Virus record (IMG/VR): IMGVR_UViG_3300029983_000007
Location: 62,001-126,000 of that record
DNA: 64,000 nt
Reading direction: 5' to 3' (one strand)
Each line of letters opens with the position of its first letter. The first letter of the stretch is position 1. Below the pieces are notes generated by a model. It did not search any database. It was given only the letters and a program-made list of their open reading frames with translations, and was not told the origin of the DNA. This document shows positions 51,112 through 63,775 of the stretch, piece after piece. Made by a program: the position numbers and the translations under genes.

Positions 51112-54100
51112 TTAATTTAAACTGACTAAATTTCCAGTTATTATATTTAAGCTATTAGCTGCATTATTAGTAGTCCAATTAAATTGAATATCTAATATTT
51201 GATCAACAGTGGTATTAATTACAACATCTGATAAACAAGGAAGTGGTACTATAGCTCCAGTTGTATTTACTCCATCAATTATAGAATACCCTGTGCATCT
51301 ACATGTTCCAGATGAACCAGTTGTGTAAACATTTAAATTTACATTTTTTGCAAAGAAATTATTTGTTCTGCCATCAAAAAATTCAACTACAGAGTTTAAT
51401 GTTGTCACAACACCAGTACCACTTATTAACTTAACTGTTAATGATGCTGTTGAGTTATTAGCACATGTATAATATCCCATCAATTCAATTTTATATGCCT
51501 TACCAATTTTTAATGTACCAGCTTTTAATGGTCTATATTTAATGAATTGTTTACCAGATCCAGTTGAACCAGCATAATTATTTGTAATCGTAAGATGAGT
51601 GTCATCTGTTACAGATGCAATTTTGTATATAATTCCTAATATACTAATATATTCTCCAACACAAAATCTTCTATGACCAGAATTTACAAATGTAGTTCCA
51701 CTTCCAACTATTGAAGTACTACCACTAGTAACAGAAATTGTACCAGTTGAGTATTCATATAACAATGATGTTTGACCTGCACCATTTGGTACATTAATTA
51801 ATTTTCCAACTGTTTTTATTACTCCTGATGCTGTTATCTCAGTTCCAGAATCATCAGCCCATCTCAATGATTGTCCGCCATTTTGAATATCTCCTGAAAT
51901 TGGAGTAGTTTTTAGAGGACCAGGATTTGCGTGTATAGCAGCAGAATTTATTGATTGTTCAGTCAATGTGATTGTTGAACCAGTAATATCTCCATATATT
52001 ATAGTAGTTCCAGTCACAGACAATATAGTTCCTGTGTATATTAATCCACTCTCAGCATATACTCCATTAGATGTACCATCTGATGTCAACACACGATTAT
52101 CAGCATAATTAGTAACTGAATTAAATCCTGTGCCTGATGTTCCATTGGTTCCTGAACTTCCTGATGTTCCATTGGTTCCTGAACTTCCTGATGTTCCATT
52201 TGTGCCTGATGTTCCATGTATTCCTGATGTTCCATTTGTTCCTGAACTTCCTGATGTTCCATTTGTCCCTGATGTTCCATTTGTTCCTGAACTTCCTGAT
52301 GCACCATTGATACCTGATGTTCCATTTGCTCCATTTGAGCCTGATGTTCCATTTGTGCCTGATGTTCCATTTGCTCCATTTAAACCTGATGTTCCATTTA
52401 AACCTGATGTTCCATTTGTACCATTTACACCTGATGTACCATTAATACCTGAACTTCCTGATGTACCATTCGTACCATTTGCACCTGATGTACCATTTGC
52501 ACCTGATGTACCAATTGCTCCATTTGTGCCTGATGTACCATTTGTTCCTGAACTTCCTGATGTTCCATTTGTACCATTTGCTCCTGATGTTCCATTTGTG
52601 CCTGATGTTCCATTTGTGCCTGATTTTCCTGGTGCGCCATTTAATGATATTGTCCAATAATTGTATATACCACTACCAATAGATGATGAAATATTTGAGA
52701 AAATTTCACCTGTTATTTTATCGTATGATAATATTTTATCAATCATGTAGTTTGATGAATCATGAGCTATTATAATATCTTGTCCTGAGGATAATGATAA
52801 ACCAGTTTCGACAAAAAATGATATTGTACCACCAGATACTATTTCTAATGTACTATTAGAAAATGTTGTGTATTTATCTCCACTTAATCCATTTGAACCT
52901 GATGTTCCATTTGTACCTGAACTACCATTTGCTCCTGAACTACCTGAACTACCTGAACTTCCTGATGTTCCATGTATACCTGATGTTCCATTTGTACCTG
53001 AACTTCCTGATGTTCCATTAGTTCCTGATGTTCCATTTACACCTGATGTTCCATTAGTCCCTGATGTTCCATTTGCGCCATTTGATCCTGATGTTCCATT
53101 AGTCCCTGATGTTCCATTTGCACCATTTGATCCTGATGTTCCATTAGTCCCTGATGTTCCATTTGCGCCATTCACACCCGATGTTCCATTTGCGCCATTC
53201 GCACCTGATGTTCCATTTGCGCCTGATGTTCCATCTATACCAGATGTACAATGATTAGTATTTTCATTGTTTATACTTACATATATTTTACCAGTCAATG
53301 AATTAGATTCAATAACATATCCAATTTTATTAATTTTGCTATTTAAATTTAAATAACTAATATTATTAATCATATCTCCACTAATTGTATCAGATAGATA
53401 TAGCATATCACCAACATTATAACTAGATGTATTTAAATTCTTAATTATTCCAGATATTAATATTAATCCAAATGAGTTTGTTTCAATATCAGAAACTGTT
53501 ATTCCATCAGCATCAGATAAATTAATATATGATGGAGATGTTAATGCCAAATCTATTGTTGGTATTCCATTAATAGCAGAAGATATGTGTACAATTTTAC
53601 CCTTGCTAATTTGATTTCCAGAATTATTATATATTTTAAGATATGATTGTTGTCCAACATTTACAGAAACATTGTTTTCTAAATCTGAATAATAAGATAT
53701 AGAATCGTCAGTATTATTATAAAACAATCCTCCTGGAATATTAGGTGGTGATGTTAGTCCTGTGTTAAATTGAATATAATTAGATTTAGCAAATCCAATA
53801 TTTGGTACTTCATTAGTAATTTTAATGAATATTTTACCTTTGGTTGAATTTTTACTAATAACAAATCCTACTTTATTTATTCTACTGTCAAATTTTAATG
53901 ATAATAAATCTGTTGTCGTTTTACCGCTGTATATATCAGACGAATAAAGGATGTCAGCTACATTATACATTGATGTATCAATATCAGATAATATACCATT
54001 AGTCAATACTAACCCTACTCCGTCATTTGGTATATCTGCTGCTGCTACTCCATCTACATCACACAACCCATTTGATGCTAATGCCAATGTTATTGCAGGT

Positions 54101-61312: not shown

Positions 61313-63775
61313 TTAAATTTCATATTGTATTTCCAATATTTTATTTCTTTCATAAAATACTATTAGCAATTTGTTTGTATCTTCAAATAATTTTATTTTC
61401 GGAATACACCAACTTACACTATTTTTATTTAAAGATATTTCAGATATTGTGTAATATGTTTTATTAGTATTTAAATCTTTAATGTCAATATTTAATGACT
61501 GCAAATCATCACCATTATAATATATCATCAATTTATTTTCATTTCTATCATAACTTATTTTTATGTTATTTTTATCTAAATTGTAATCAATTATATATTT
61601 TTTAAAATCAAATAATTTAGGATTTTCTACCAATTTTGATTCAATTATTCTATCAGTTATCATTTCAGGAGTTATGTTAATAGAACATTCAAATTGTTTA
61701 TCTGTATCTTTATGCATAGGACACCAATTCCAATCACCTGGATCAAATTTATGAGTATTAAAACATCCATTACAAACATTAAAATTGTGTATATTTATGT
61801 TATTAGTTTTAAACTCACAAAAAGGATTAGAAAAACCTGACATCATTACTACTTTTTTACCTACAGCCCATGCCAACCAACTCAATCCTGAACCAATTCC
61901 AATATAGAATTCACACCATTTTAATTGATTTATTCTGTGCTCAATAGGAAAATCACCAGTGTTATCTATAATATTTTTTAGATTTGTTGATTGCTTACTT
62001 ATTGTCATAACTTTATACCCTTGCGTATTAAGCCAATCAACTAAAATTTGCCATCCTTTATTACTATCTTTACAAGGATAATGCCAATGTTTAGAGTTCG
62101 CAGTTGAGAATTGCCCAATACAAATATATTTTTCTTTAATTGGTCTAACGCCTTCAGGAATTTCAATCTTTGGTATTATTTCTTCATATTCTAATCCAAG
62201 AATATCACTTGCTGTTTTTTGTAATGGTATGGTTTTATAATCAATCGGATTTTTATTACTATCAAATGGTGAATACCATCCAATTTTATATTTAGCATAT
62301 AAATTTTCTGTGTTTGCTTTTCCTGGATCAACAAATGTTATTTCTGGGTATTGTTTTATAAACCAACTATTCCAAAATGTTGAGCACTGAATATTACAAT
62401 TATGTTTTTTTCTAAATTCTTCTACATATGGAAACCATGCTAATGTATCTCCAATTGATTTACTTTCTATTGTTATTAAAACATTTCTATTTGTTAAATC
62501 AAAATCATGTGTAATTAATTCGTTATTATGAAATATATTAATTTTATACTCCTTATAACATTCATTATTTGTACGACACCAATTATTGTTATTTAATGTT
62601 TTTTTGTATATAATTTCTTTTGTATTTTTATCTATTATTTCAACATCAAACTCAGATTTTACATCTCCAAGAATTTCTACATTTGCACCGTTAATAAAAC
62701 TAATATTATAATCATATTGTGGTTCTATTAATTTTTGAATTGTTTTATTAAGATTAAGTGTGTCATTATATTCTGTTGTTAATCTTGATTCAAATGTTAC
62801 ATTATTATCTATTCTTTTAATATTAAAATTATCCAAAATTCTTTTAGAATCTTTATCAACATTCATTGTTAAATATTTAATATTTTTGCATGAATCATAA
62901 GTATCTAAATATGTATTAAGATTATTTAAATAAATAGGCATATTATATGATGTTGCTTCTTTAACAGCTAACGGGTTCAACTCTAATATAGAAGAATGAA
63001 TTAACAAATCAGATGCTTGGTAAAATGTATCAACGTCACTTCTTTCTCCATGTATTATACAATTAATTGGTTTATTATTTAACAAAGGTTTCCAATAATC
63101 TTCAAAATTTTCTGCTTGATTACCAACAAAGTGAAATTGTATTTTATAGTCTTTTAATTTTTCAGCTATTTCAAATACATATCCTTGATTTTTTCCTTTT
63201 GTGAATAACCCAACATTTAAAACATGAAAATACTCAGAATCAAATTTTAATTCGTCAATAGCTAATCCTTTATTTGCTATTAATTTTTCAGATGGATATT
63301 CAATAATAGAAGATGGAATATTGAATTTGTTATATTGTAGTTGTGAATATTTTGATACAAATAAAAATTTATCTGGGAAATATTTTTTTTTGCTAATATC
63401 AAAAGTTGAAGTATGAGTAGTTTCTATTATTTTATATGGTCTGTCATTTCTATATAACCAATTTATATGCTCATTTCTCATTCCAAAAATAAATATTTCT
63501 GGTATTTCTTCCATATGAATAATATCAGGATTGATATTATTAATTATATCTTCAAACAAATCACGCTTTGTTTCATTTTCATTATCTCCAAGCGAAATGA
63601 ATTTATCTCCTAATAACTCAATAAGTCTATTCCTCTGCACAACAAAACTCCAAGAAATTTGTCTATATTCAATAAGATATACATCATTTGTTTTTATTAA
63701 ATATTCTACTCTTTTAAGAGCTACCATCGGAAGTCCTCCTGTAGATCCGTGAGGAATTATTATAAGTATTTTCAT
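61313..63775 (-). CDS. Bifunctional GT4 plus autotransporter O-heptosyltransferase-like (TibC/Aah) glycosyltransferase
   Basis: NVGLFTKGKNQ, ELNPLAVKEA (GT4); SIGDTLAWFPY, SGLSWLAW, CNGCF...WCP...FECS. Confidence 0.8.
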   Translation of the reverse strand: MKILIIIPHGSTGGLPMVALKRVEYLIKTNDVYLIEYRQISWSFVVQRNRLIELLGDKFISLGDNENETKRDLFEDIINNINPDIIHMEEIPEIFIFGMRNEHINWLYRNDRPYKIIETTHTSTFDISKKKYFPDKFLFVSKYSQLQYNKFNIPSSIIEYPSEKLIANKGLAIDELKFDSEYFHVLNVGLFTKGKNQGYVFEIAEKLKDYKIQFHFVGNQAENFEDYWKPLLNNKPINCIIHGERSDVDTFYQASDLLIHSSILELNPLAVKEATSYNMPIYLNNLNTYLDTYDSCKNIKYLTMNVDKDSKRILDNFNIKRIDNNVTFESRLTTEYNDTLNLNKTIQKLIEPQYDYNISFINGANVEILGDVKSEFDVEIIDKNTKEIIYKKTLNNNNWCRTNNECYKEYKINIFHNNELITHDFDLTNRNVLITIESKSIGDTLAWFPYVEEFRKKHNCNIQCSTFWNSWFIKQYPEITFVDPGKANTENLYAKYKIGWYSPFDSNKNPIDYKTIPLQKTASDILGLEYEEIIPKIEIPEGVRPIKEKYICIGQFSTANSKHWHYPCKDSNKGWQILVDWLNTQGYKVMTISKQSTNLKNIIDNTGDFPIEHRINQLKWCEFYIGIGSGLSWLAWAVGKKVVMMSGFSNPFCEFKTNNINIHNFNVCNGCFNTHKFDPGDWNWCPMHKDTDKQFECSINITPEMITDRIIESKLVENPKLFDFKKYIIDYNLDKNNIKISYDRNENKLMIYYNGDDLQSLNIDIKDLNTNKTYYTISEISLNKNSVSWCIPKIKLFEDTNKLLIVFYERNKILEIQYEI

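Follow-up and report, generated by a model that had tools for sequence, protein, structure and literature searches.

A TibC/Aah-family heptosyltransferase fusion in a glycosyltransferase block of a huge peat phage suggests O-glycosylation of fibre-like phage proteins

We examined a 64,000-nucleotide stretch of viral DNA (hereafter the window), which comprises bases 62001-126000 of a single virus record, IMGVR_UViG_3300029983_000007 (330,208 bp, G+C ~25%), and in which glycosyltransferase (GT) genes lie together with a collagen-like fibre gene and a gene for an IPT/TIG (Ig-like) domain protein at positions 51112-63775. We lean towards reading this locus as a protein O-glycosylation block of a huge phage that acts on the phage's own fibre-like proteins. 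The enzymes of the locus were identified and found intact, and their gene order is conserved; the acceptor, the glycan, the location in the virion and the biological role are what we infer. An earlier note on this DNA had proposed that the phage glycosylates its own proteins here and had placed five GT domains around the fibre. All five (GT6, GT4, BAHT and two GT-A folds) were recovered at the positions it gave, with every named gene of the locus on the minus strand. Its broader proposal stood in that a TibC/Aah-family GT lies in a dense GT cluster, and gave way in that the collagen fibre is not the conserved partner of this enzyme.

The enzyme at the center of this reading is an 820-aa fusion (61313..63775, minus strand) composed of an N-terminal GT4 domain (~330 aa), a TibC/Aah-type BAHT domain (aa 359-710, window 61646-62701) and a ~105-aa tail of unknown fold. 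Both halves of the GT4-heptosyltransferase label assigned in the earlier note were borne out, as residues 175-285 match PF00534 (E 1.7e-11, 44.4 bits against a gathering threshold of 26.4) and the heptosyltransferase half scores 308 bits against NCBIfam TIGR04414 (E 8e-92), well over the cut-off of 200 for this equivalog-level model of the "autotransporter strand-loop-strand O-heptosyltransferase". Alignment with TibC in the PDB (4rap/4rb4) extends over 335 residues (E 6e-60) and pairs the catalytic base Asp110 of TibC with D443 of the phage enzyme, the sugar-binding Thr226, Lys230, Arg286 and Trp305 with T558, K562, R614 and W633, and the iron-binding Cys339/342/358/370 with C668/671/685/697. 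These correspondences were counted along the printed TibC alignment, and the residue roles are those of the TibC structure paper (PMC4358343). Moreover, when 15 homologues from phages and metagenomes are aligned, the Asp, the Lys, the Trp and each of the four Cys show no variation. Judged by its sequence, the C-terminal half of the fusion is a member of the TibC/Aah protein O-heptosyltransferase family, whose enzymes carry out direct cytoplasmic O-heptosylation of protein from adenosine diphosphate (ADP)-heptose (PMC4358343; TIGR04414 family definition). Because members of this family glycosylate protein directly, protein glycosylation is the best reading of the locus, over modification of DNA or of lipopolysaccharide (LPS) or another lipid-linked glycan.

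Homologues of the TIGR04414 type number ~2,700, some of them on phage-like contigs, and automated annotation already gives the TibC/Aah family name to metagenomic homologues; a literature search returned no publication on a member of the family that is encoded by a phage. Another phage example was observed in Microcystis phage Mel-JY01 (4750-8430 of analysed stretch L003), where a 1226-aa gene annotated 'methyltransferase FkbM' carries a C-terminal TibC-type domain 42% identical to that of the window. This gene adjoins a 'structural protein' gene, and a cytidylyltransferase-like gene lies nearby.

Immediately downstream of the fusion gene, and starting 35 nt after it, lies the gene for a 676-aa IPT/TIG protein (59247..61277, minus strand; PF01833, E 1.3e-22), in which a conserved 58-aa N-terminus is followed by what appear by eye to be seven tandem IPT/TIG domains. 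With a Ser+Thr content of 24%, it fits its previous description as Ser/Thr-rich. Bacterial enzymes of the TibC/Aah family place the heptose on serines of the protein whose gene adjoins their own. In the tibC-tibA and aah-aidA operons the transferase gene stands directly upstream of the gene for its substrate, and the phage layout is alike in that the enzyme gene directly precedes that of a repeat-rich, Ser/Thr-rich protein. We then collected relatives through the heptosyltransferase domain and compared their gene content, counting the TIG protein over 14 related loci, 13 of which encode a TIG orthologue (40-71% identity) at the same position. Relatives whose polB is 77-91% identical keep a fixed order of GT4-heptosyltransferase, TIG protein and GT-A transferase, with a 134-aa open reading frame (ORF) and polB coming after this trio and one relative carrying an extra gene before the GT-A gene. 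GT6 is found in most relatives and is missing in L018 and L028, and the collagen-like fibre and the GT25-like gene occupy this position only in this genome and in the identical contig L020; we regard these two genes as additions, with homing endonuclease genes at their flanks. As it is the order around the TIG gene that relatives keep, the TIG protein rather than the collagen fibre is the conserved partner of the enzyme. We therefore propose the TIG protein as the main acceptor of the heptosyltransferase, with the collagen fibres as plausible extra acceptors outside the core of the system.

Further features of the lineage are consistent with this proposal. Two distant TIG orthologues (L028 9423-11873 and L031 9640-11838) have C-terminal extensions in which poly-Thr forms long stretches of mucin-linker type, whereas the TIG protein of the window has no such extension. 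Large Ser/Thr-rich or collagen-like proteins also recur a few kb upstream of the enzyme across the lineage. Here, a collagen-like protein of 1498 aa and a Fib_succ_major protein of 877 aa are encoded just outside the window. In the 735-kb phage LR756501, a GT4 protein, a GT4-BAHT protein, an orthologue of the 134-aa protein and a collagen-repeat protein are all neighbours.

The third member of the conserved trio is a 303-aa GT-A fold glycosyltransferase (58221..59132, minus strand; phrog_4417, E 1.5e-69) with an invariant D99-P-D101 motif. Its AlphaFold2 (AF2) model has a pLDDT of 95.2, and Foldseek places it with the catalytic domain of UGGT (GT24), with LgtC and glycogenin (GT8) and with GT6. 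The GT95/96-like label it had been given was not reproduced, as none of 22 family members matches the HPAT model PF23452 at E <= 1 and the fold is nearer to GT24, GT8 and GT6; the sole hint of GT95/96 was the presence of PF23452 in 10% of the proteins of a neighbouring Atlas cluster. A search of PDB sequences returned spurious TAL-repeat matches only, with no passing stretch. In Enterococcus phage phiFL1A a phrog_4417 homologue is the next gene after that of the major tail protein, and in Lactobacillus phage iLp84 one comes after the head genes; in phages of 316-365 kb such homologues stand between a gp25 baseplate gene and proteins of >1200 aa, beside two GT2 genes.

Two further transferases complete the set. 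The 256-aa GT6 glycosyltransferase (57432..58202, minus strand; phrog_3317) passed PF03414 (E 9e-16, 58 bits against a cut-off of 25), in agreement with its label, and shares 28% identity with the GT6 of cyanophage P-SSM2; at 78 bits against the 250 required by NCBIfam Gltr_6, it is a divergent member. The 205-aa protein (56088..56705, minus strand) has a GT-A fold with an E-D-D motif at aa 76-78, of which D77 and D78 are invariant in 21 homologues. The GT25-like label previously attached to it holds for the fold and not for the sequence: the AF2 model (pLDDT 95.7) finds its best PDB folds in Mimivirus R655 and human COLGALT1, both GT25 (TMq 0.57-0.63), and PF01755 is matched over aa 57-90 only, with 15.2 bits against 24 (E 0.02). 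Its predicted structure thus makes it GT25-like at fold level; searches gave no sequence match in the PDB and no tblastn match in phages. The GT6 and GT25-like genes pair up on other contigs (L015-L017) and are directly adjacent in L015 and L016, and here the pair is split by a GIY-YIG/NUMOD3 homing endonuclease (56720..57451, minus strand; PF01541, PF07460; phrog_314). All of the GT genes are co-directional, with intergenic gaps of 14-114 nt or overlaps. A profile search of the whole 330-kb record yielded no GT2 and no second GT4, which indicates that the clustering of GTs at the locus is real rather than a product of chance.

We also assessed where the heptose might come from. The record encodes a homologue of the sedoheptulose-7-phosphate isomerase GmhA (record 254267-254851, minus strand), which at 207.3 bits falls just under the cut-off of 209.45 (E 1e-61); it adjoins an ankyrin-repeat ORF and is kept in two relatives. 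A CTP_transf match considered as a heptose nucleotidyltransferase proved to be NadD instead, and a GmhB-like match is weak (60 bits within a 317-aa ORF). Since gmhA is the only gene of the heptose pathway found in the record, either the host or the half of the genome that is missing must supply the other steps to ADP-heptose. Genes of another pathway were observed as well, with a glutamine-dependent nicotinamide adenine dinucleotide (NAD) synthase directly upstream of the GT4-heptosyltransferase gene (record 125887-127653, minus strand) and the nicotinate-nucleotide adenylyltransferase NadD at record ~314.1-314.8 kb; the phage thus carries part of the NAD pathway.

The collagen-like fibre itself is a 1191-aa protein (51112..54687, minus strand; PF01391, E 3e-40, 136 bits against 27.2) laid out as a duplicated N-terminal module (copies at aa ~126-293 and ~305-475, 54% identical), a first Gly-X-Y block, a 78-aa spacer, a second block and a 337-aa C-terminal domain. 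The two proline-poor blocks that had been noticed are indeed present, at aa 483-605 (window 52873-53241) and aa 684-854 (window 52126-52638), with 41 and 57 uninterrupted triplets, respectively, exact numbers that should be treated with care in this assembly. Contigs of four peat metagenome runs compared with the fibre gene break inside the Gly-X-Y blocks, where foreign collagen-like fragments pile up, and leave the 5' third of the gene without depth. Together the blocks hold 294 residues, including 1 Pro, 2 Lys, 118 Ser/Thr and 33 N-G-T motifs; their triplets are mainly GTS, GTN, GAN and GSS, with Thr prevailing at X and Ser/Asn at Y, and their coding DNA is a degenerate 18/27/45-nt tandem array. 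A 176-aa frame of PDVP-like repeats (52130-52660, plus strand) is the antisense of this array and was rejected as a gene.

The dozens of N-G-T sequons emphasized in the earlier note were thus counted as described, but they do not exceed what triplet composition gives, as shuffling of the triplets yields a similar number of N-x-S/T sequons (34 observed vs 30.3 +/- 2.3, P = 0.075). In addition, neither GT41 (PF13844) nor STT3/PglB (PF02516) has a match in the record. With sequons not enriched and these N-glycosylating families not found, any glycosylation is more likely O-linked. Glycosylation of hydroxylysine in the manner of collagen was considered and ruled out by the presence of only 2 Lys in the blocks together with the failure to find a PF13640 2-oxoglutarate (2OG) oxygenase. 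Outside the collagen region, the N-terminal module matches annotated tail fibres of several unrelated phages (Roseobacter phage CRP-6, E 9e-14); PHROG "tail fiber" matches of the whole protein are driven by the collagen repeats, and the C-terminal domain has no phage tblastn match and uninformative Atlas scores of ~0.82. We additionally observed that a 48-aa segment, 56% identical between the two proteins, directly follows the Gly-X-Y blocks in both the fibre (aa 855-902, window 51982-52125) and the 1498-aa collagen-like protein (aa 89-136, 9521-9664 of analysed stretch L001). This segment may serve both proteins for trimerisation or registration.

In the mechanism we propose, the GT4-TibC/Aah fusion would initiate glycosylation in the cytoplasm by transferring heptose from ADP-heptose onto protein. 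The main acceptor would be the rod of seven IPT/TIG domains encoded immediately downstream, and the nearby Ser/Thr-rich collagen-like fibres would be further possible acceptors. A short glycan would next be built up on this first sugar by the fused GT4 together with the GT-A (GT8/24-like), GT6 and GT25-like enzymes, before assembly of the proteins into the particle. More heptose precursor would be available through the GmhA of the phage, and a Gram-negative host would provide the remaining ADP-heptose steps. We favor protein glycosylation because of the equivalog score of the BAHT domain, its kept residues and the adjacency of the TIG gene conserved in the lineage; because distant TIG orthologues carry poly-Thr tails and large Ser/Thr-rich proteins recur nearby; because phrog_4417 occurs in virion modules elsewhere and the N-terminal module of the fibre matches tail fibres; and because of the gmhA homologue, the concentration of GTs at the locus and the precedent of the mycobacteriophages.

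Comparison with known systems shows which parts of this proposal have counterparts. With the TibC/Aah enzymes the phage domain shares homology over ~335 residues together with the catalytic Asp, the Thr/Lys/Arg/Trp set and the four iron-binding Cys. It differs from them in its fusion to an N-terminal GT4 and an extra C-terminal domain, in the Gly that replaces Pro300/Ser294 at the TibC stereoselectivity site, in a shorter version of the beta-hairpin thumb that builds the dodecamer ring of TibC (PMC4358343), and in having as its neighbour a TIG rod rather than a beta-helical autotransporter. In mycobacteriophages, virion glycosylation with O-linked glycans on the phage's own structural proteins has been proposed or shown, the glycans reportedly being carried at the C-terminal ends of subunits of the capsid and the tail tube (Freeman et al. 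2023, Cell Host Microbe, as cited in PMC12619734); in contrast, the likely initiator here is of the BAHT type, the candidate acceptors are fibre-like, and the system is a prediction from its genes. Mimivirus similarly encodes collagen-like proteins along with the collagen-modifying enzymes L230, R655 and R699 (PMC9546862), and the best folds for the 205-aa protein are R655 and COLGALT1. These enzymes, however, glycosylate hydroxylysine, for which the Lys- and Pro-poor phage blocks and the lack of a PF13640 match in our search offer little counterpart, and the sequence similarity of the 205-aa protein to GT25 lies under the Pfam cut-off. Both virion glycosylation in phages (the mycobacteriophages) and collagen-like proteins accompanied by GTs (the giant viruses) are already known. 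The exosporium protein BclA of Bacillus has a hydroxyproline-free, Thr-rich collagen-like region with O-linked sugars, built of GPT triplets with Thr at Y and bearing rhamnose-based glycans. The phage blocks differ in carrying Thr at X (GTS/GTN), and no rhamnosyltransferase was identified at the locus.

Several observations weigh against glycosylation of the phage's own virion proteins. The TIG protein and the fibre are putative virion parts; searches of PHROGs and, by tblastn, of phage records gave no match for the TIG protein, and in the close relative L018 an unrelated 225-aa protein takes its position. A search of the 330-kb record for TIGR04415, the canonical heptosylation target repeat, was negative at E <= 1. 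Within the enzyme, the thumb is shortened by a 9-residue gap at the site of TibC Phe265/Val266, and stand-alone BAHT genes on other phage-like contigs have no obvious fibre genes adjoining. GT6 and GT25 are best known from the synthesis of LPS or lipooligosaccharide (LOS). The heptose supply is likewise incomplete: of its pathway the record yielded gmhA alone, neither this record nor any of five relatives gave a PfkB kinase, and gmhA is absent from LR756501 and Mel-JY01, both of which carry the heptosyltransferase domain. Finally, CheckV estimates the completeness of the record at ~46%.

As an alternative, the GTs could act on the LPS, capsule or surface proteins of the host during infection, for example by masking receptors against superinfection, with the fibre-like genes as mere neighbours. 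GT6 and GT25 are typical of LPS/LOS outer-core synthesis (PF01755 Pfam description), GmhA feeds the heptose of the LPS core, GT6 genes of cyanophages (phrog_3317) are filed as auxiliary or host-takeover functions, and not all phage BAHT genes are found close to fibre genes. The BAHT family, however, is defined by direct cytoplasmic O-heptosylation of protein and not by synthesis of lipid-linked glycans, its member here keeps its synteny with the TIG gene throughout the lineage, and phrog_4417 falls within virion modules of unrelated phages; nor did a flippase or ligase turn up, although no search was aimed at either. We consider remodelling of the host envelope by the locus as a whole unlikely, and possible for the GT6 and GT25-like enzymes specifically. 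Decoration of hydroxymethylated phage bases to evade restriction is a common role of phage GTs (review PMC12619734), and the genome does contain a gene of the thymidylate synthase family. That gene, however, ranks with ordinary thymidylate synthases in a PDB search, with no deoxycytidine monophosphate (dCMP) hydroxymethylase among the 60 best matches, while none of the five GT domains resembles DNA glucosyltransferases in fold or family searches and BAHT is a protein transferase. This makes DNA glycosylation very improbable.

It is also conceivable, though in our view rather unlikely, that a hot spot beside polB has gathered unrelated genes, such that only the GT4-BAHT/TIG/GT-A core cooperates, while the targets of the GT6 and the GT25-like enzyme and the role of the collagen fibre are separate and unrelated to it. 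The block contains or adjoins three genes of the homing endonuclease type, the gene content varies among close relatives precisely in the fibre, the GT25-like gene and GT6, and the latter two travel as a pair of their own in L015-L017. Such an assembly of strangers is harder to reconcile with the tight, co-directional spacing of the GT genes, which suggests co-transcription, and with the lack of a GT2 or another GT4 elsewhere in the record. The two endonuclease-type genes inside the block mark it out as a hot spot of recombination, in keeping with the differences in gene content between relatives. The number of homing endonucleases and these differences suggest that part of the block may be a set of accessory genes and not a single pathway.

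The origin of the DNA and the surroundings of the locus can be summarized as follows. By sequence, the source genome is that of a huge phage from peat, in accordance with its earlier assignment to a phage: the polB fragment beside the locus has its closest match, at 55% identity, in the polB of the uncultured phage LR756501 and is more distant from the polymerases of jumbo phages of Chryseobacterium and Tenacibaculum, the 205-aa protein recurs in identical form on a 711,471-bp contig, and the fibre gene is present in at least 14 peat metagenome runs. Phage records searched by megablast with the locus yielded no match. The baseplate and sheath families PF04965 and PF04984 (gp25 and sheath markers) were not found in the record, and hence the locus cannot be placed relative to a recognised tail module.

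The family-B DNA polymerase gene is split. In the polB region (48442-50952), only the N-terminal half is present, as a 493-aa frame at 49471-50952 that covers the exonuclease and the start of the polymerase domain. After this half, on the opposite strand, comes a DUF7487 gene whose product has a treble-clef zinc finger; we interpret this gene as a mobile element of the endonuclease type, and the relative L018 shows the same arrangement. Between the fibre and the GT25-like gene, the 134-aa protein (54902-55306, plus strand), which stays beside the heptosyltransferase in relatives, is 55% identical to its orthologue in LR756501 and 71-80% identical to those of closer relatives, and it is followed by a 232-aa Lys/Asn-rich ORF (55311-56009, plus strand) whose C-terminus looks HNH-like, as judged by eye. 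We further noted a complete phage-encoded cation diffusion facilitator (CDF) metal efflux transporter at 45723-46592 (minus strand; PF01545, E 7.5e-46, with a ZT_dimer domain).

Beyond this single locus, we tentatively suggest that huge phages recruited a TibC/Aah enzyme, a type otherwise known only from the maturation of autotransporter adhesins in bacteria, and fused it to a GT4, and that the fusion starts a heptose O-glycan on Ig-like and collagen-like virion fibres. Held with the same reserve, this reading would amount to a heptose-type pathway of virion glycosylation that is fed in part by GmhA, with stand-alone enzymes in other large uncultured phages. Very few systems are known in which phage particles are glycosylated, and glycans on fibres could alter host recognition, stability in soil and recognition by defences. 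If true, a TibC/Aah enzyme carried by a phage would extend the known substrate range of its class past autotransporter beta-helices.

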